Part shown: positions 47,137 through 61,136 of the stretch, one piece after another
How the letters are laid out: each line of letters starts with the position of its first letter
How positions within the stretch are numbered: the first letter of the stretch is position 1
Source of the DNA: Oikopleura dioica
Lineage: Eukaryota; Animalia; Chordata
Direction of reading: 5' to 3'
Length of the DNA: 64,000 nucleotides
NCBI GenBank assembly: GCA_907165135.1
Contig: OU015568.1
Span: 1,178,001 to 1,242,000 of the forward strand
Position numbers and translations under genes: made by a program
The notes under the pieces: generated by a model
The model's database searches: none
What the model was told of the DNA's origin: nothing
What the model saw: only the letters and a program-made list of their open reading frames with translations

Positions 47137-50100
47137 ATGGGACTAGATAGATCAGATTCTGCGTATTACATTCGACCGAGAACAGAAGCTTACAAGATCA
47201 GAACAAGAAGAACGGAAGGAGAGCCAGTTTTTCAACCTGAGAATGTTATCGAGGAAGATTTAGGAACCGTGGCGCAGAGAATTAAGAGACTTCAAAGTTT
47301 GGAAGATGATAGTTTTTCGGGACACGATATTTCGGGGACATGGAGGAGAAGGAAGAGAACGCAATCCACAGGAAAGGCTTTCTAGAGAATTTTAATGAAC
47401 TCTTTTATGAAAGAAAAAGAGCTTCTGAAAACCTCTGTAAAGAAAATCTCGACAAACTCGACAACCTTGAAACCGAAATCCACCAAAATGCATCCGTCTC
47501 GACAGTGGAACTTTCCGAATCTCAAAATGATCATCCATCATCTCGCAATGGAAGCTCAAGCTCCAGCTCAAATACCAGCTCAAAGAAAGAAAATCGTTAC
47601 ATTGTCGAAGACGCCGAGTCTGCAACTTCCTCGAGCTCTTCTTCTTCCGACAGCGAGGACGAGAGAAAGATTGATGTTTCTTTTGAAAAGAAAGGAAAGT
47701 CGGTCGAGTCGAGTTTTCACAAGTTTTATACTGACTCTGAGGAAGAAAGTGCAAAAGTCGACAAATCAAGCTCAGAAAACGAGGATCAGCTCGAAGTCAC
47801 ATTCGAAAAAGAGCCGAAAAGAGTAGAAGCCTGCATTTGGGACGAGGAAACCGCCTCGGATGAGCAATCAGATGTCGAGATTTCGTTCCAACAAGCGCCC
47901 AAAAAGGTCGAATCAAGTTTCTGGGATGAAGAAACCGCCTCGGATGAAAAATCAGAAGCAGCGGATGAAAATGTTTTCCACAACGAAAAGTCCGAATTCA
48001 GAGCGCAAAAGCCCTCGGAGCCTGATTCTATCGCTGCTCCTCTGACATCTGCCAGTACGTTCTGCGACACAACTCTAGAAGATGACACTACAACAGGCTT
48101 TTCGCTGAAAACAACGACTGTATTCACTTCCGAATGCGAGAACAAAGAAGGTCTTGCAACTCGCGACATTATCCACACTGCGACGAATGAGGATGACAAA
48201 GACGACCTCGTTCTCAAATACGAGAGCTCAGCCCCTGGAACGATCACTTTTCCGAAGAAACAGACCTTCGGGGGTGTTGAAGAGTGCTTCATCGAATTTG
48301 AAGATCCACAAGAACTCAAGGTACGAAAAGAGCAGCAGAAACAGCTAAAGATTACAACAACAAGTCGCAAAGTCGAAACGGAAGTCGAATCTGAACCAGA
48401 ATTTACCTTTGAAGAGACGAAACAGGTTCACTCGAGAGTCAAACTCAAGGGCTCAGATTATGAAAATGACAAATCACCGAAGCTAAATCAATCTCTAACG
48501 GCGAACATGACTCTTCAAGGCTACACAACAGGTTTCACCGATGGCGAATCAACACACGATGAACTTGGCGACACGATCCAGCGACACTCCATCTTCATCT
48601 ACAAAGGTAGAAGTCTCCAATTGTGGCAGGGTGAAAAAAAAATTTTTTTTTCTGAATGGCTCATCTGAAAGAGCTTCTCAAACTGTATAAAAAACGTTTT
48701 TACAGTCTGCCCAAATCTTTGAAATTTTCGAGATTTGGACTTGTCAGAGGTGGAAATTCCGAAATTTTAACTGCTCGTAGAGCAAAATTTTTCCATAACA
48801 AATTTTTTTTTCTATTTCTTTTCGGAAACTCTATAGTCGAATCTATGTGCTCGCGAAAATTGAAGCAGATCGGGCAACATTTGGGCTGCAAAAATTTTTT
48901 TTTGAGGATTAGTTTTGCATTAATTTTGCAAATATAAAGCATATACTTTTATTTAATTACAAACTACAAAAAATTAATCAAATAATGCTCTTAAGTCACT
49001 TGAGGTCATTTGAGGTCATCTGAGGTCATTTGAGGTCAACTTTTTTTTGCCGGTAAATTACATATTTTTATTTATTTGAAACATGAAAACGATTATTTTA
49101 TCAATTTTAAAAACAAAAAATAATTTTTATACCGTGCATATGTGTAAGATGCAAATGTAAAAGCACTTTAAACTAAAAAGAATGAGGCATGTTGTGTTTG
49201 TTCCTTCTCGTTTTGTTCTTCTTTGAAAAATCTTCTCAGTCAGAAAATCCAGGCATTCTGCGATGAAAATTTCCTTAATATTTTTAAAATTTAAAAAATA
49301 AAGATACAAGCAATTACTTTTTTTTCTCGACGGCATAAGAGAGAGTTTAGAGCAGTCAAAGAAGATTGTTTGACGATCTGAAACTTTAACACTGAGGATT
49401 TCGACCATATTTTTCATGTTTATAAATACCTTTCTTTCGTTTAGGAAGACTCCGTGGTTCTGGATAACTGTCATTCGCTGTTAAAATTTGTTTTTCGACG
49501 CTCTATTAAAAATAATTTAAAAGGCAAAGATTTCAGATAGTAAGATATTTGAAGTTACTGTAAAATATTCTTTATTTAAGGACTTGTTTGCTAAATATCC
49601 ATTTTTCGAAAAGAATGATGCCGGGGGCAGGGTCCTTAAATCTAAGCTTCTATGAGTATCCTCAATTTTACCTGAATAATTGAGACGATTAATTGACGAG
49701 CATAATTGTCTTTCAGATGAACTTTATCTGGCGAAAAAAAATGCTGTTTGAGGCTTCTGAAGAATCGGTACTCAAAAACATTCAATTTTTTAGTTCTATT
49801 TCCAATTAAATGAAAACCTCTTCCTGTTTTACTCGATAATAGTTAGCTAAGCTAGGTACTTTTGCACTTAATATCTTCTTGAGCCATTTTTGTGTTGATT
49901 CTTCAATTGTTCTAAGCGGCTTAGCAAGTGGAAAAGGTTGAACAAAGAGGATTTTTCTTGCATTCGTAAACAGCGATGTAAGGGTTCTATGTAAAACCTT
50001 TGAAAAGTTCTTTTATTTTTATTTTATTAATTATCTTTATAATCGGACATAGATAAAAAAAATGTTCTTGCGACGATTTAGATAGAGAGAGAACTATCCT

Positions 50101-53100
50101 GAATTGCTTTATCTAGGTCAACATCTTGGAATGCCAGTGTTGATGCCTTCAGAATATTGTTGTGTCCAGCATAGACTAGAACTGTTCCGGAGACGCGCGA
50201 ATGACAATTTGTATGGCAATTTTCGCATAAAAATCTCTCCGGTAGATTTTCACCATAGTTCCAGGCATTCCGGCTCTTGATTTGAAGAATTGGTCTTCTT
50301 TCCTCATCGCAGATTTGTCCTACTTTCATCAGGACTGCTAATTCAGTTAAACAGGCACCAGAATATGACGTAATAATCCAGTTTTTTCTTTAATTTGTGT
50401 TTTCCGAAATATTTTATCTAAAGTGGTGTTTGAATAATTTCTTACTTTAGCTAATGAAACACATATATAAGGGGACTCCGCGGAAAACCAAAAGCAGGTC
50501 GCACCCTCATATTTTGAAAATTTTTACGCGTCTACTTAAAGATCTCAAGATGCTCATTCAGAATCGCGATTAAAAATTGTATCGGGGGCATCGGGATATA
50601 GAAATGATGGCCGCCGAAAAGAGGCCCACAAACCATAAAATCGAATTTTTCTCGAATTCCCAATACCCCCGATACGATGTTTATTCGCGATTCTGAACAG
50701 GCATATCAAGAGCTTTAAGAAAATGTGTTCAAAATTATCTCTCCATAAGGACGCCCCCATTAAAGTATTTTTTCCGCGTAGACCTAACTGTTCTATCATC
50801 TTTTTATATTCAAACAGTCCTGTGAATCTCCGAGAAGGAAATTTGTTTTTTCGTATCCGAAGAAACATGGTCGGCGCCAGCACTCTCGTTCATGCCCTTT
50901 GAACCATAAAGACTCCATAACTAATGTATGATATTAAGGATAGAACATGGATATTATGGATAGAACATCGGCTGAGCGCGGCTGCCCGTTTAGCGCCCCG
51001 CCATGACCGTTTTTTCAGAGACCCGTCAAATCTGAACGGTAAATGATTTTATCTTTATTATTTTAGCTTTATGATCATCAAAGCCTATTCTTTTATACAA
51101 ACAATTTGAAAATATCAAAATGGGATAACTTGGTCAAAGTCTCGGAATGAGAGCGACTCTTTCAAAGCCCTCTATTAAAATCTAAAGATTTATTTTGAAA
51201 CTCAGACTAGAAATAAAAGGAAAGTAGAAGTGAAATAGAAGACTAAAAGTGAAGAAGTCGGAGCTCTACAAAATCGAAGAATATAATTCATCGTTCAGAT
51301 TAGCCGGGTCTCTGAAAAATAGATAACGACGGCGCGCTAAACAAGCAGCCGATCTTATATTTTACGCTTAAGATGGAGAAAACAATTTTTCAATTAACTA
51401 GTTTTCCATTTTTCTAACATAGATATTGCGCTCATTTTTCTGACCTGTGTCGAGGCATCACCCATGTTCCGTTATGAGAACATACAGACAGTTTGAATCG
51501 ACGATAAATATTAAATATCTTCTGTGTTTCAGGATTTGATTGAAGAATGGCTGTTTTATTTTATAGTCACACGGGCAATAAAAAAAATTATAAGCATTCT
51601 GAATTCAATGATTTGATTTCTTCTTTCTTTTGCCTTTCTTTTACTCACAGAAAAGAGAATTTCAAAAACGAGAATTAACAATTAGGAATATTTGTATTTA
51701 ACAACGAGGAAAAAAAATGTAATCGTGATATTTCCAGATCAGGAAAAACGGACTCTTTTCGATTCAGCATTGACTTCACTTGAATGCTGTGCGACTCTTT
51801 TTGATGGAGTTGTTTTATTGCACACCCAATGACTTAAATTTATGAACTGTATTTATTCATATTGCCATACTTAATTTTTTTGAGTTGATTTTCCTTGATC
51901 TCAAGAATATTCGACGATGTTATTTCTGGTGTTCCAGCTTTGAATTCTTGCTCAATTCTATAATAATTTTTATAAATAATTTTAAGCAACAAATAATTTT
52001 AAAGATTTTTTTTAACCTGTTGAGCACATAGACCGCGCAATCACGATTCGTTTGCGGAACATTTTCGCGTTTTTTCTTCCAAGGGCCCTGATCATTCAGA
52101 ATTTTTCCAATAGTATCAAGAAGTTTTTTTTTCGAACTATCAATGGCGTTTTGATAATTTCCAATAGCCCCATTTGTATCATAGACAGTAACTGAGCGAG
52201 ATTTGACATTAACGATCAAGAGTGCCGCGTGGTTTTCATCTTTTGATGACAGCAATAATGGTGCACAAATTTTTTTCGTTTCTTAAGGCTTGGGTCATTA
52301 TAAGTGCCTTGAGTCATGTTTCCGACGGAAGATGTAGGATATGAGCAAAAATCTGTTTCTCGAATTTCAAATTCGGACAAGATAACGATTTTGACCCCGG
52401 ACTTTGGAAATTTCCGCTTTCAGAGAAGATTTTGATATTTCGCTTAAGAAAAACAGAAAATTAGGTTTTAAAGCTCTAGAGTCACACCTTTGGCGGGCCA
52501 CAGGGTAGAGGATACTGACTGTTTTATTTGTATTTTCTAATCTTAAGAGCGCAATCTTAATCAGGGTTCTCTAAAGCATATAGCCCTGTTTTAGTTAATG
52601 ACGTTCGGTCGTTAAAACCCTTAACTGAGCTTGAATATCTGTTGCAGAGTAGACGTAATCGCTGATTGTTTGTTTGTTTGATAATTCTCGAAGATTGACG
52701 GGTCTTCTTTGAGGCTTATTTTTATTATCAATAATTATTGTTCCGTCTTTCTGTCCGATTTTTCTGGAAAATGTGTTTCCAGAATTTCGAACACAGAGAC
52801 TAATTTTTCCACTGGAACAGAGATCGCAGCTGCAGACTATGTCTTTTGCATAAAGAGCTCCTCTTGCTGCGTCGAAGTTTATCATACGAATCGATTTAAT
52901 TGACGGTATGTTGAGATTTACGGAAGATTTCGTGGTCTCTTCATTTTTATTCTTGAGAATGGCATATTCTCGCCCAGCAAAATTTTGTTTTGCGCGTTTT
53001 TCTTTTTCTTCTGTCCGCAGCTTCTGCTCATTTTCCTTCAAGAATCCGAGGCATTCATCAAGAGTACCACAGCGATTTACAAGTTTCGCATTTTTTATCG

Positions 53101-56100
53101 TGGTAGCGCAGTGACTATGGGCGCCATCGACGAGGCCTCAGAATTCTAGAATTAGTTTCGCGGAAAAAATACCTTTTCCATGGCGGCTGGTTTTGAAAAT
53201 ATAAGTTCTCCGCAGGCCATCGTTATTTGAAATGGCATGGTGAAAATGTTCCCTCGATTTGAATTCAGAGCTCGCATTATGTAAAACAGGGTTCGGGAAA
53301 TTCAAAGATCTTATAAATCCGCAAGATCGAAATAGACCATTACCTACCGACGAGCCATAATGGAATTATCGTCAACATTAAAATGCAAATTTTAACCCTT
53401 TCGAACCCTTTCAGAAATCCTGTTAATGACTGTGAAATTTATGTTTCGATTTTTAAAATTTTCAACAATCATTTTTTCCGCCTCAATCGGCGCTCCGGCA
53501 AATTTCTTCTCCATAAGAAAATGAAAGTATTGCATTTTTTGTATTTCGTTTTCATTCCATCGAGCGACCGCCGTTAAAACGTTACAATTCAATCCAAGGC
53601 GCCCGGCTTGAAGATATTCATGCTATTTTTAGGGTTCATGTAAACAAGCCAAGCGAAATTAATGAATTTTCTGATCCCGAACTGTGACGCAGTATTATTT
53701 TGAAGAACAAACGTCGAGGCGTAGTCAAGCTTTCCACGGGTCTCAGAAAGTTCTTGCTTATAGACACACTTGACGTATTCATTCGATACAATTTAAGACC
53801 CTCGGCTCAAGATGAAGACTCCCTGGCTTAACATCTCCATGTTCATATACTTTAAGATCTTCTTTATTTCTGCTCTTGTCGATGCTATGGGCAAGTGTTT
53901 CTCTCGTCATACTTTTAAGCTGATCGAAGAATTGCCGTATTGGCATTTTACCGCGAGTTTCGCTACCAGAAACAAAAGCTGTCTCAGCTTTAACTCCAGC
54001 TTTGAGGAGTTCGAATCTGTCAAAGGCAACGGTCTCGTCAGGATGCATTTGTACGACTTTTTCGAATATTTCTCGATCAAAGTCTTCCATAAATTCATCC
54101 GGACCAACGCAACTCTTGTGAGTGCAGTCGCTGCAGGATGTTGAATTTTTTGGGTGAACAAAGCAACTTGTCTTCTTTTTACGATCAGTGACACAATATT
54201 GTTTGTCCGTTGTTGCACAGGTGCTCCTTTCCAAGATTTCTTTGAAATTGAAGCCTGCCAATGCGGGAACGTCTTATGGAGGGGGGCCTTTTTATCCTCA
54301 AGATCTTGTTAGGACCTGTTAACGGATTCTGCGATGAACTGTGATATCTAAGAAAAGAGTCTCCTGTCCTAATTTCTTTCCAAGGCTCTGCGCAGCCTTC
54401 TCATAAGTTCCCTTGTTAAGGCAGGACTAATAAGTGGTCTTAATCATATCATGGTGTGATTTCCATAACAGTGACAATAAATTTATAATAATTCACGATT
54501 TAAGACCCTATCTCGCAGTGTATATCCTCACTCACATTTTCATGACCATAACTTTGCAGGTGCGAAGAGCAATCTGCTTCCGCTCCTAATTCATTCACTG
54601 AAGACGTCGATAATTGAATTTCTGAATCCTCATCAATCGTAAGAGAACTTATATCTGGCACAGAAGGCGCTCGTTCGTTCATTATGTCGAAATCTGATGA
54701 AGATGGTACACTTGGAACGCATCCGTTCATTATGTCGAAATCTGATGAAGACGGTACACTTGGAACGCATTCGTTCATTGTGTTTATATGGTCAAGATCA
54801 GGGTCTCGAAAAATACGAGGCCAGGCGGCAGCCACAACCCACTCATACTCTTTTGGTTTCCACCTCTTAGAGACCCACCTCCGCTGGCCGCCAGGGTTCA
54901 GCGGCCACTTGGTGATTCATCTTGCGTTAACGCGACCCAGTCCGAATTTTACATTATCCGAGGCTGAAATTCGGTCTCCAGTGGAATCCAGCGGCCAGCG
55001 GCTGGCTTTGCCGCCAGAGCGTGGATTCGAAAAATGAATGGAGGCCGTAAGCGAAGGGCGCGCGGAGTATGAATAAATCCTCGCCGCCGCATGGCTGCCA
55101 ATTTTTCGAAACCCTGGTCAAGATTCATCACACTTGGAACTCGACCATAAAAACCTCCGTTAAATCAGTCAGTTCAGAGTTATTCGCCTGAACCTCATCG
55201 TGGGAATAAACAGAAATGGTGTCAATATTAAGAATTGACGGAGCTGTGCCAAGCGGTTCATTTAGATTATCAAGTCTCTCGAGATCAAGAACACTGAAAT
55301 GCAAAATTAACTTTAATTCAATCAATCTTGAACGAATAAAAACCTTGGTACTTGAAGAAGATTAACAGGAGCTTCATTGGGGTCAAAGTCATAGTTAGAC
55401 ACAGCATCAATAGAATCGATATTCATGACGCTTGGCGCTGGACCAAGTGCGCATAAATCATCTGGTGGTGGTTCAACAGGCATCATAGAGACGCCAAACT
55501 CGGACATCGTCTAAATACTTTAACAATTAATCCTTATCCAAGATTTTATCGAACAAATTGCTTAAGGGTAACAATCACGTAAGAAATAAGGAAAGAGTGA
55601 AAGAAAAGGATAAACATCGTAGAACATTGACATCATAACAGAACTTCTCATCCACGACGACGACTTAAAAAAAGAAAAATGAACTCCACATCATATAATT
55701 CGATTTTACCACAAGTTTTTTGGAAACAACGATGTGAGAGAGACAAATTTTCCACACAGTAATTCGTAATAACCCTGATGTCGTCCACCTTGATTGTAAG
55801 ATCGTCTTATTCTTTGTTGGAGACGTAGCTCATCATATGCACGATGAAGTTGATATATTCTGTAGTCTAAACACCTCGTCATTTCCAAAACATCTATTGT
55901 TTCTTTAGATATTTGATTCCAATTTGAAGGCTTGTCAAGTTTTTGGAAGAAAAAACTTTTAACCAATCGTTCAGCTTTTAATCTGAGCCATTCTTTCGAA
56001 GAGATCGTCTTAAATATAACAGCAAGCTCAAGAGGCCTCTTAACTATAAATTTTGCAATTTCTCGATCGTCTAGATCAGAGCTGGTTATTTGATAACTGT

Positions 56101-59100
56101 CGTCACTCGAAAAGAAAAAGAATTAATTTTTAGAGAAATTTTGGAGACTTTTAAAGCGCTTACTTCTATTATCTTTTTTCTAAAGCTTTCTGAAGATGAT
56201 TGAACGAGACGAACGCGAAAGATAGAAAAACGACGCGTAAATATTAATTCGCACACTAAAATTTTTTTGACAGATCATAGGACGCGAATTCGACAGCCAT
56301 GATCCCGATTATAATCGAAAATTCATATGATAAGCGGTACCGCACATTCAAAAGAGCAATTTATGACAGGCCCGCCCTGAAAATGGAAAACGAAAAACGA
56401 CTCGACAGTCATAGTGGCTTCGGTTCTTTCCAATATATCTTCTAATGCCCTGTACATTTGCTTTGGAGCAAACTCAGGGAGTTGGCTTTGCACGACACGA
56501 GACATCATAAAGGTAAGATTCGCCATGGTCCCCGAGCCATCATTTGACACTTCGAAGGAATTAAGGAATCGTGGGATTTTTCCAAGGTATTGTTTTCGAG
56601 CATCCATGGTTTTAACTAAGCAGATCAATTTTTATACTTTTGAAGCAATAATCAACGATCAGAAAGCAGAAAAAGCGGGTGTGCGCTCCGCGCCTGTCTT
56701 AAAGGAAACCCGCAACTTTCTAGAATTGATGGCCTTGAGGGCGTTGTTGAATTCAGGTTATAGGGACTTTTGCTGATTTCTAGAATGGTCTTTATAGCCT
56801 CGATGGCCATGATGTCCTTGATGGCCTTGTCGACAATCTCTTTTCTCTTATCGCCAGAGAGAAATGAAAAAATCGGTCAAAACGAAAAACACAAAGAAAC
56901 CGACTTAAGCCGACCACCCACCGACCAAACCCCACCACCGATCAAATCAAAAAAATCCATGGTAGGATCGTTCGGTGCCAATATAAACCCCACCATTTCC
57001 GACTAGGTCGAGTTTTTGGTCGGGTCGATGGCCTTGATGGCCATGCTGGCCGTGATGGCCTTGATTGCCTTGTTGACAATTTCAGGTTCATCCCTATTAA
57101 AGGTGTAACGAACGTAAGTGATCTTAATTCTCGGTCCGAGCCAGAGTTGCAGATTTTTGAAAATTTTTTGTGAGCTGAGCTAGCTGAGCTGTGGTCGAAA
57201 TTGAGCTGAGCTGGCCCCTTGAAAAGCAACTGAGCTGAGCTGGATTTTTCGAAAAAATGAGCTGAGCTGAGCTGAGCTTGGGCTAATTTGAAAATTTTTG
57301 AGCTAAGCTGAGCTGACAATTTTTTTAAGCTGAACTGAGCTGAGCTGGCCCCTTGAAAAGCAACTGAGCTGAGCTGAATTTTTTCGAAAAAAATGAGCTG
57401 AGCTGAGCTGAGCTTGGGCTAATTTGAAAATTTTTGAGCTGAGCTGAGCTGACAATTTTTTTAAGCTGAGCTGAGCTGAGCTGGCCCCTTGAAAAGCAAC
57501 TGAGCTGAGCTGGATTTTTTCGAAAAAAATGAGCTGAGCTGAGCTGAGCTTGGGCTAATTTGAAAATTTTTGAGCTGAGCTGAGCTGACAATTTTTTAAG
57601 CTGAACTGAGCTGAGCTGACCCCTTTGAAAACAACTGAGCTGAGCTGAGCTGAGCTGGATTATTTCGAAAAATTTGAGCTGAGCTGAGCTGGGGTTTATC
57701 TGTTAGTTTTTGAGCTGAGCTGATGATTTTTCAAACTGAGCTAGCTGAGCTGAGCTAGCTGAGTTGAGGTTAAAATTGAGCTAGCTGAGCTGATCTGACT
57801 TTTCTCGAAGAACCATTGAGCTGAGCTGAGCTGAGCTGGCCCCCTTGTAAAGCAACTGAGCTGAGCTGAGCTTGGGCTTATCTGAAAATTTTTGAGCTGA
57901 GCTGAGCTGACAATTTTTTAAGCTGAACTGAGCTGAGCTGACCCCTTTGAAAACAACTGAGCTGAGCTGAGCTGAGCTGGATTTTGTCGAAAAATTGAGC
58001 TGAGCTAAGCTGGGGTTTATCTGTTAGTTTTTGAGCTGAGCTGAGCTGATGATTTTTCAATCTGAGCTTGCTGAGCTGAGCTGACAATTTTTTCAAGCTG
58101 AGCTGAGCTGGGCTAGCTAAGTCGAGGTTAAAATTGAGCTAGCTGAGCTGAGCTGACTTTTCTCGAAGAACCATTGAGCTGAGTTGAGCTTGCTTTCTTC
58201 AGAAAAATTAAGCTGAGCTGAGCTGAGCTGACCCTCACCTCGAAATCGCTGAGCTGAGCTGAGCTGTAGCTCATCTAGCTCATATAGCTCACCTCAGCTA
58301 GCTCACAAAATTTGTAACTCTGGTCCGCGCTATTCCGATTTACGGAAAAATGTAAAATGAGGGAATTATAATGGCCTAAATTCCCTTTTATAATTTTAGA
58401 CTTGTAATAGATATATCTGTATAAAAAATAAGTCAAACGATAATTATAATAAATAAGTATAAGAAGGACCACCGAACATACTGTTTTTTCAGAATTTTTT
58501 TCTGCGCGAGGCCCATCTAGGCCAAAACCGTGGGGGAAGTCTTTAAAGCATACCTTCTGTCTTCGTTTGGATTCTACTTTCTTTGGAGTCAGTCGTTGGC
58601 AGGATTTCTTCTGTTTTTGATTTTTTCTGCAATTAACAAGCGTCTTATATAATTTTAAGAATAAATATATATATTTAGTATACCTGTCACTGGTATCGAA
58701 AATTATTAACAATCTTTCTCTTAGCTTTCTCTTCTTCTCTTTCAATTTTGTGTGTTTCACAGAATTAACTTTCTCGAAGTGAACTGCCAGCCAGAAATTA
58801 GTTTGGAAATTTTTTTTTCATACTGTGATTTTGATTGATGCATCCATTAAATAATCATTAATGAGCGAGGTAGTTCCGGAATCGCGAGCGCATGTGTACA
58901 CTTCACCGTCGATCGATATTGAAACAAAAAATTTTCAAAATCAAATGAGCAATATTTTTGCTCAAAATTATTATTTTCAAATTTAAAATAAATAAAAAAT
59001 TGTAATTTAACGGCAAAAAAAATTGTTCTCAAATGACCTCAGATGACCTCAGATGACCTCAAATGACCTCAAGTGACCTCAGAGCACTATTTGATTACTT

Positions 59101-60909
59101 TTTTGTAGTTTGTAATTTAATAAAAGTGTATGCTTTGTATTTGCGAAATTAGTGCAAAACTAATCCTCAAAAAAAAATTTTTACAGCCCAAATGTTGCCC
59201 GATTTGCTTCAATTTTCGCGAGCACATAGATTCGACTATAGAGATTCCAAAAAAAAATAAAAAAAAATTTTGTTATGGAAAAATTTTGCTCTATGAGCAG
59301 TTAAAATTTCGGAATTTCAACCTTTATCAAGTCCAAATGTCGAAAATTTCGAAGATTTGAGCAGACTCTAAAAACGTTTTTTATACAGTTTGAGAAGCTC
59401 TTTCAGATGAGCCAATCAGAAAAAAAAAAATTTTTTTCGACCTGCCACAATTGGAGACTTCTACCTAAAGGTCAAAATCCTACCTGGCGAGTTGGCCCGA
59501 TTCTAAATGATCCCCGCTGCTGGCTGTCGTCAAGCGCGGAAGGGGATTACGAGAGCTTCATGAAGGGAGAAAAGCAATGCCGAAGCTTTCACTACTGGAT
59601 GGAGTTTGGCCGCGGCGGTTGGGTTCGATCTGGAATCTTCAGCATTCGAGAATATGGTTTTGGCGCGCAAAATCTAGGACATTGCAATGGCACTTTTAAT
59701 GCGGCTTGGAAGTCAAAGGTCATTCCGGGCATTTACGATCGCAAAGTTGATGAAAACGGCGATCATTATTTTGAGCGGACGGCGTTTGCGAAGGGCACTC
59801 CAAGTATGGCTGGAATCGTCGATGGGGAAAGCAGCGATCTGCCTCCTTTGATGATGCGGGAGAAAGTGACAGTCAGAAGCTCTGCGGATTTCTTAGTCGA
59901 GAAATCAGGACGAGTAGACTTCAAGCCTAAAGAGCATGCACCAATTGTTCCGGCCGAAGATGCTGTTGATGGACCAGGTTTGAGAAAAACTCGAATGAAA
60001 AATCGTTAATAAATTGAAGGGCTTCAAAGAGGCGAGTCATTCAAACGCGAGGAAATGCGACTGAATTCAGACTCGCATGACATCGAAAAGGTAATATCTT
60101 TCCGAAGTAATCACTGAAACTGAAATTCTAGAGAGTTCCCTATTACCTCTACAAGCATTCGAACTGCTGGAAGATTGGCCTAACTGCCGGAGCCGCTAGA
60201 GCGGTTCTGATGACGTTAGAAACTGACTTCAGAAAACTTGACAGAGCAAAATGGATCGAGGTCGAAAGAAACACAAGAAACTCGAAAAAGTATTCACCAA
60301 TATTTTTCTATTTTATTTTAATTTTGCTTTCAGAATGAAGGATTCTCAAGTGTTGATCAAAAAACATCCCTTTGCTCACAATCTAGGTAACCAAACTTAC
60401 AAAATATCGTTCTGATAAAATTATTCTAGTGCAAATCGAAGCATCGTTGAGGTCCCAAGAGCCCATATCCGGAATTTACTACGAGCTTGAAGATCAGGAA
60501 AATGTTTGGAAGCTGACAACATCGATTTATGTCACTGGGAAATTCGCAACAGAGTGGAAAAACGCCACGCTTCCTGGTTGGTATGACCGAATAGGTCCGG
60601 AGATTTTCATGAGTCGCCATTTGGTGAGAGCTTTTTTTATATTTTTTTCTTTTGAAAAGCAAACTAAGAACGAAACTGATAAGCAAGAAATCTTCATTTA
60701 TAAAAAATCTGGAAGATGGCATGTTGGCCCAGATCCTCGAGAAAAGATTTGCTGGCTTTTCTCAGGTAAACCTGAAATTTCGAGTAAAAAATAATTCTGT
60801 TTTAGGTAAAAATGAGCGCCACCTTCACGTGCAAACGAGGTGGTTCGAAGCCGACCAGGGCCAAAAATGGATTCGCAATAGAAGCATTACTGCCGCGCTT
60901 CGTCACTAG
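47137..60909 (+). CDS. Unknown protein: long acidic/Ser-rich region plus two IFIYK..WxVGP..CWL..W repeats; interrupted by the 10.86-kb transposon
   Basis: ORF ends ..HSIFIYK at 48605 and resumes GQNPTWRVGPILNDPRCWL at 59470; second repeat EIFIYKKSGRWHVGPDPREKICWL near 60690-60760; stop 60907-60909. Confidence 0.7.
48606..49100. repeat. Left terminal inverted repeat with (TGAGGTCANY)n array at 48991-49040
   Basis: Reverse complement of 58965-59465 with scattered mismatches. Confidence 0.9.
49670..50380 (-). CDS. SGNH/GDSL hydrolase-like cargo gene (multi-exon; block I not located)
   Basis: ITSYSGA (block II), TVLVYAGHNNIL (block III), PDKVHL (block V), inserted CENCHTNCH. Confidence 0.55.
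50978..51351. mobile_element. Nested ~375-bp element with ~70-bp imperfect TIRs
   Basis: CGGCTGCCCGTTTAGCGC..TTTTTCAGAGACCCG..ATCTGAACG versus the inverse at 51280-51351. Confidence 0.65.
51739..55507 (-). CDS. Multi-exon DDE transposase, Sola2-like, with C-terminal Ulp1/C48 protease-like domain (ends uncertain)
   Basis: Cys-rich CSDC..C region; LDYASTF (first D); RIS[D]NASSEFKSR; YIFKTSRHGK/GLVDGAHS (HGKG..DG); CSCDLC; then HAALLIVN..VYDT..VPQTNRDCAVYV at 51920-52255. Confidence 0.75.
54640..54780 (-). repeat. 48-bp coding tandem repeat (MNxCVPSVPSSSDFDI) x~3
   Basis: CGTTCATTATGTCGAAATCTGATGAAGAYGGTACACTTGGAACGCAT repeated. Confidence 0.85.
55706..57100 (-). CDS. Additional unidentified minus-strand ORF pieces inside the transposon
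   Basis: ORFs 55706-55966 and 56323-56628, plus 9-bp repeats encoding GHQ-like triplets at ~56800 and ~57030; no domain recognised. Confidence 0.3.
57142..58322. mobile_element. Nested hAT-like non-autonomous element filled with a (GAGCT)n satellite
   Basis: CAGAGTTGCAGATTTT ... AAAATTTGTAACTCTG ends; 8-bp TSD GTCCGAGC/GTCCGCGC; ~135-bp higher-order units (GGCCCCTTGAAAAGCAAC at ~57212, 57346, 57482). Confidence 0.8.
58965..59465. repeat. Right terminal inverted repeat with five TGACCT units at 59034-59079
   Basis: Reverse complement of 48606-49100. Confidence 0.9.
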
Positions 60910-61136
60910 ATCGTTTTTTATACTGTTCCTATTTGTACGAGATCATGTAATAAAGAAGAAAGATCATCAAACTTTTTTTTGTGGGGTCTTTACTTTTTCG
61001 ACCATGTTCAAAGAAGTCTTGAGGCAGAAAGAGTTCATGTTAAGTTACGGAGTTCTGAGCAAAACATGTGTTGCAACTCATGAGCCGTAAATATATCCTT
61101 TTGGGAATATACCCTTTTTCATTTGAATGTGAATAA

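Follow-up and report, generated by a model that had tools for sequence, protein, structure and literature searches.

Introners that carry their own 5′ splice site and draw the 3′ site from the target have been described (Gozashti 2022, 10.1101/2022.06.06.494994). Most introners are non-autonomous, and autonomous intron-forming TIR elements have already been reported (Gozashti 2025, PMC12130899), so being autonomous would not in itself be a novelty. In the larvacean Fritillaria borealis, MITE-derived introns are known (reviewed in PMC11282704). For another larvacean, Oikopleura dioica, the OKI2018_I69 assembly derives from a single male and comprises 64.3 Mb in 19 scaffolds, with heterozygosity of about 3.6% and a median intron of 49 nt (PMC8008620). 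Here, we analyse a window of 64,000 nucleotides from O. dioica in which a large DNA transposon interrupts a coding exon. Its position would permit exact removal as a GT-AG intron. We nonetheless put the probability at roughly 0.68 that the locus is a young disrupted allele, null or leaky, produced by insertion of a Sola2-like element into the host exon.

The transposon begins with GGTAG at 48606 and ends with CTACC at 59465, within a coding exon of the host gene. The features of the locus are as follows.

47340–48605, plus strand: host coding exon upstream of the insertion, acidic and Ser-rich
48603–48605, plus strand: left 3-bp TSD (AAA), its length taken from five sister copies
48606–59465, strand not assigned: Sola2-like cut-and-paste transposon, internally deleted copy, 10,860 bp
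48606–49099, plus strand: left TIR, 494 nt, bases 2–3 forming the putative GT donor at 48607
48607–59470, plus strand: hypothetical scarless GT-AG intron, 10,864 nt, by geometry alone
51920–52255, minus strand: Ulp1/Peptidase_C48 domain (E 1.5e-7 on a sister copy)
52598–54518, minus strand: remaining exons of a Sola2-like transposase, the catalytic part, with motifs DYAS, ..EFKS and HGKG.VD
54518–54519, strand not assigned: junction of a 2,732-bp internal deletion, from comparison with sister copies
54799–55116, minus strand: nested hAT-like MITE, 318 bp, 8-bp TSD, identical in all six copies
57170–58300, strand not assigned: GCTGA-repeat satellite block, found in all six copies
58964–59465, minus strand: right TIR, about 500 nt, about 90% complementary to the left TIR
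59466, plus strand: extra T between right TIR and right TSD, absent from sister copies
59467–59469, plus strand: right 3-bp TSD (AAA), which with the host G at 59470 gives the putative AAG acceptor
59470–60910, plus strand: remainder of the split exon and short-intron exons, with two further Y.YK..W..G repeats; exon limits by eye

When 48607–59470 (GT..AG) is removed computationally, the host exon is rejoined exactly and in frame, the first G of the element substituting for the host G that leaves with the acceptor. The host reading frame continues without a stop for 431 codons upstream of the insertion site and for 179 codons downstream of it, and the two later Y.YK..W..G repeats agree with the rejoined frame. 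In these respects, a preliminary description of the locus, which had proposed an exact GT-AG intron within a host exon and had supported the frame by a repeat later in the gene, is borne out.

The same description had assigned a 4-bp TSD (TAAA) to the insertion. Each of the five sister copies has a perfect 3-bp TSD (AAA, TCA, ATG, ACT and TCT), and a 4-bp TSD here would further require that a T on the left had since changed to C; this reading was rejected. Given the sister copies, the copy in the window is most plausibly parsed as AAA, element, T, AAA, the extra T at 59466 probably reflecting imprecise transposition. The empty site is identical under the 3-bp and 4-bp readings. With a TSD of 3 bp, the proposed rule for scarless sites keeps its splice-compatible A^G geometry and, as read from these junctions, is NNA^G rather than NNNA^G.

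DNA and pattern searches of the genome (64,281,565 bases, 19 contigs) recovered exactly 12 TIR ends, which correspond to six copies of the element. The five sister copies are 13,608–13,635 bp long and 99.6–99.8% alike, and identity across all six is 99.4–99.8%; the family has been very recently active. The same searches for TIR ends found no short derivatives, and the TIR pattern had no match in metagenomes. Because 12 TIR ends account for just six copies, with no short derivatives, the family is not a large-scale source of introns. ARAGORN detected no tRNA in 49320–59600. In motif counts and later alignments, positions 49275–49310 were masked or skipped.

The copy in the window was taken for a transposase-encoding parent. 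Owing to its 2,732-bp deletion, the transposase gene lacks a large part of its N-terminal half, including Cys/His-rich and presumed DNA-binding exons, so this copy is non-autonomous and not the autonomous parent. The 13.6-kb sisters are candidate autonomous elements, some with apparent homopolymer frameshifts. The remaining transposase exons had no Pfam match; they match an intronless relative on a metagenome contig at 39% identity, and this relative is grouped with eukaryotic DUF7869 clusters at 0.95 in the ESM Atlas. The Ulp1 domain is probably the C-terminus of the transposase protein, which would make the product a DDD-type transposase–Ulp1 fusion; a segment similar to Ulp1 lies in frame in the relative L023. 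Sola2 termini read GRG..CYC; the present family begins GGT, and a related family begins GGG, its GGGAG-ended element having a 3-bp TSD (ATT). The motifs favor, with moderate confidence, a placement that we word as Sola2-like rather than Sola2, because a 3-bp TSD breaks the 4-bp rule of that group.

The host gene is single-copy in the genome, where the only other match is a weak one of 30 amino acids. Its pieces were searched exon by exon, flank pairs being joined only for local translation to read frames. Protein searches, whose length limits make them silent on full-length kin, returned no homologs; the pieces had no Pfam match and no match in JGI metagenomes, and the best ESM Atlas score was 0.82. 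The host exon, in whole or in part, is present in six DNA sequencing runs and in no RNA run.

The preliminary description regarded the insertion as old, pointing to mismatched TIRs and nested insertions, and took the open host halves as a sign of tolerance by splicing. The left and right TIRs do differ at about 30 positions, and the set of mismatches is the same in all six copies, as are the nested insertions. These marks are family-wide and arrived with the element; they were ruled out as a measure of age. Since the supposed age marks occur in every copy, the indirect argument for tolerance fails, and open host halves are equally expected of a young null allele. Sequence divergence is a weakened guide as well. 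The window copy carries 39 private substitutions (0.36%), compared with 1–8 in its sisters, and these avoid the 1,676-bp transposase core (1 seen versus 6.1 expected, P=0.011). This avoidance suggests that much of the divergence probably arose on an active lineage before insertion. Selection is not the only possible cause of the avoidance, since all six window-private changes inside ORFs are non-synonymous.

Sister insertion sites bear on whether the geometry seen here is a property of the family. As classed from 1.5-kb flanks, four of the six copies apparently lie in coding exons and the remaining two look non-coding. The four exonic sites are these.

Host gene of the window: AAA^G, scarless-compatible
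Thioredoxin/PDI-family gene on C5: AAA^G, element genes antisense to host
Thr-rich protein gene on C2 (copy C2a): TGA^G, element genes sense to host, GAG acceptor
Ankyrin gene on C2 (copy C2b): ACT^A, nearest AG giving a −1 frameshift, not scarless

From contig sizes, we take C1 to be pseudo-autosomal, C2 X-specific and C3 the Y-specific region; the C2 copies are probably X-linked, hence hemizygous in the source male. The C2b site shows that exonic insertions exist without a scarless route. A G follows the TSD at nine of 12 strand-sites, and at 6/8 of the non-coding or antisense ones, where A is the last TSD base in 2/8. These two frequencies imply that about 19% of sites would be scarless from target preference alone. 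On the host strand, NNA^G is found at three of the four exonic copies, where target preference alone predicts about 19% (P=0.024); leaving out the pre-selected window copy raises the value to P=0.095. The excess is a weak hint, not a result, and leaves the splicing idea in play.

We favor the following account of the young disrupted allele. A member of the 13.6-kb Sola2-like family, with TIRs of about 500 bp and a 3-bp TSD, has interrupted a coding exon of a host gene that occurs once in the genome. The splice-compatible geometry would be a by-product of the G|GT terminus combined with a target preference, C-NNN-G, that mostly places a G after the TSD. Most host transcripts would probably be truncated through a nearer acceptor or poly(A) signal in the AT-rich element, and the allele would probably be heterozygous and not yet purged. 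This account is supported because the family consists of only six near-identical copies, because C2b has no scarless route and because competing signals are present on the host strand; a median intron of 49 nt and a heterozygosity of about 3.6% argue the same way. Counted against it are the location of four of the six copies in exons, which is many if all are harmful, the placement of three of four exonic copies at NNA^G, and the frequency of AAG acceptors in introns of the window.

The strongest rival, which we consider possible but doubtful, is that the element acts as a facultative giant intron. The spliceosome would use the TIR donor and the acceptor formed by the TSD and the following G in at least part of the transcripts, the stem of about 500 bp formed by the TIRs would perhaps join the ends and hide cryptic sites within them, and insertions at NNA^G would be partly tolerated. 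The exact geometry of the window copy is consistent with this possibility, as is the same geometry at C5 (AAA^G) and C2a (TGA^G), and introners with their own donor and a target-derived acceptor are documented (10.1101/2022.06.06.494994). AAG acceptors make up 13 of 22 in a rough, noisy automatic intron set from the window, so the scarless acceptor is not disqualified. According to folding calculations, base pairing between the TIRs can extend over some 460 bases (−677 kcal/mol), with the donor and most of the acceptor region inside a perfect 26-bp terminal stem. Such a stem could bridge the two ends, yet it also buries the donor, and it could form only once 10 kb more have been transcribed, all of it carrying competing signals. 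The modelled genes of the window copy are all antisense to the host, as first described, but this does not hide signals on the host strand, which within the element include 27 TTT[ACT]AG, 9 GTAAG and 11 AATAAA. Splicing to any AG in the first 260 nt past the donor would run into a stop no more than 88 codons on, and a T-rich CAG acceptor lies 64 nt upstream of the scarless AAG, out of frame. Other observations that weigh against splicing are the sense orientation of the element genes and the GAG acceptor at C2a, the exonic and non-scarless C2b copy, the lack of short intron-like derivatives in the genome, and the related GGGAG-ended family, whose termini have no GT. Because the spliced product would equal the empty allele, junction reads alone prove nothing unless phased.

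A stronger version of the splicing case, which we judge unlikely, is that the family is a working giant introner, with efficient splicing of 11–14 kb. With the G|GT terminus, the 3-bp TSD and the C-NNN-G preference, a high proportion of exonic insertions would then be scarless, and the long TIR stem would enable efficient splicing in an animal with 49-nt introns. If so, genes could carry full-length elements without harm, the PDI-family gene on C5 among them.

It is also conceivable, though very improbable, that this host allele no longer functioned or was not needed before the insertion, for instance because of a frame break near 47335, in which case neither splicing nor purging would be needed. 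An upstream ORF at 47137–47385 is coding-like and out of frame with the ORF at 47340, and sequencing run X1 contains all 153 of 153 words sampled from this upstream stretch, making a plain assembly error less likely (about 3% if evenly sampled). However, a canonical GT-AG intron of 74 nt at 47312–47385, with a typical T-rich acceptor, could bridge the two upstream frames; alternatively, the host gene may start at 47340. Moreover, all host exons downstream of the insertion are open. This scenario overlaps with that of a disrupted allele. Finally, that mis-assembly put a repeat copy into the exon is scarcely credible: the assembly is Nanopore-based with merged haplotypes (PMC8008620), but the locus-specific TSD, the 39 private substitutions, the private deletion and a host frame continuous across the insertion site all speak against it.

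What the locus means depends on whether the element is spliced. If it is, this would be a rare animal case in which a gene-sized, transposase-bearing element turns into an intron that is removed exactly, within a genome that has introns about 200 times shorter. Intron gain would then have been caught at the very start, and three sites would serve as natural tests. If it is not, the insertion is an ordinary young allele, and the finding reduces to a family of Sola2-like elements that has a 3-bp TSD and probably carries a Ulp1 fusion.

Compared with Sola2 elements DFa-2 and PPa-1 (PMC3627910), the transposase has a like order of motifs when matched by eye (F..P, Cys cluster, D[FY], D..xxFKS, HGK..VD), and the size of the element is comparable to the 12–15 kb given there. 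The family differs in its 3-bp TSD, which is 4 bp in Sola2 (PMC3627910), in its TIRs of about 500 bp, which are 12–22 bp in the DFa-2 and PPa-1 examples, and in its Ulp1 domain, probably fused to the transposase. Like TIR/TSD introners, the element supplies a donor, takes an acceptor from the TSD plus a host base, and would leave mRNA length unchanged. Known introners, however, are present in many copies as annotated spliced introns and are mostly short, whereas this family has six copies of 10.9–13.6 kb whose splicing is hypothetical. The MITE introns of Fritillaria borealis share with the present case a tunicate lineage and an origin in TIR elements. Those introns are short, non-canonical and spliced, whereas the candidate in the window has canonical GT-AG ends, exceeds the median intron length about 200-fold and is hypothetical. 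If it is spliced, the novel part would be the size of the element in a tiny-intron animal.

Full-length sister copies of the element appear to lie in other host genes of the same genome (G000):

G000:C5:4897297-4910926 (sequence handles L002 and L010), full-length family copy at an AAA^G site, element genes antisense to the host
G000:C2:5049829-5063436 (L005 and L012), full-length family copy in a coding exon of an ankyrin-repeat gene

The first copy interrupts what appears to be coding exon 1 in a gene of the thioredoxin/PDI family. Given its site and the antisense orientation of its genes, this copy is the best test case for scarless insertion of a full-length element. The second copy was inserted after 16 codons of an exon of at least 498 codons. 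Its site is not scarless, and the ankyrin-repeat gene is therefore probably broken, and hemizygous in this male; contig C2 is probably X-specific.

The element family also carries a nested insertion:

window 54799-55116, minus strand, hAT-like MITE of 318 bp with an 8-bp TSD

Its sequence is identical in all six family copies; the site of this MITE is a part of the element's large gene that codes for repeats. Potential splice sites lie close to both of its ends, the donor 4 nt in from the left and the acceptor 6 nt in from the right; removal through these sites would leave a predicted 18-nt scar, in frame. Should the surrounding stretch belong to the active transposase, splicing may remove the MITE as well. 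The frame here is uncertain, because a T-run shortly upstream differs in length (5 T in five copies, 6 T in one).

Upstream of the split host exon, and in a different frame, lies another segment:

window 47137-47385, coding-like ORF

The frame mismatch would be explained by a 74-nt GT-AG intron (47312-47385), by gain or loss of 1 nt in the run of G near 47335, or by a separate start. In the host protein (window 48567-60910) a short motif, Y.YK..W..G, occurs three times as a repeat, and Pfam, protein-database and Atlas searches with it gave no match above noise.

Other relatives were found as well:

G000:C4:5757697-5761158 (L062), distant transposase paralog, 29% identity, with an Ulp1-like segment downstream
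G000:C4:10707111-10709489 (L039 and L040), related element of 2.4 kb with GGGAG ends and the 3-bp TSD ATT

In L023, a 2.3-kb ENA metagenome contig, the transposase relative is almost free of introns and has its Ulp1-like segment C-terminal, in the same frame, making it useful for modelling the transposase protein. Ends like those of the GGGAG element also occur at C2:8303408 and C3:2277350. Unlike the window family, the GGGAG element has no GT after its first base.
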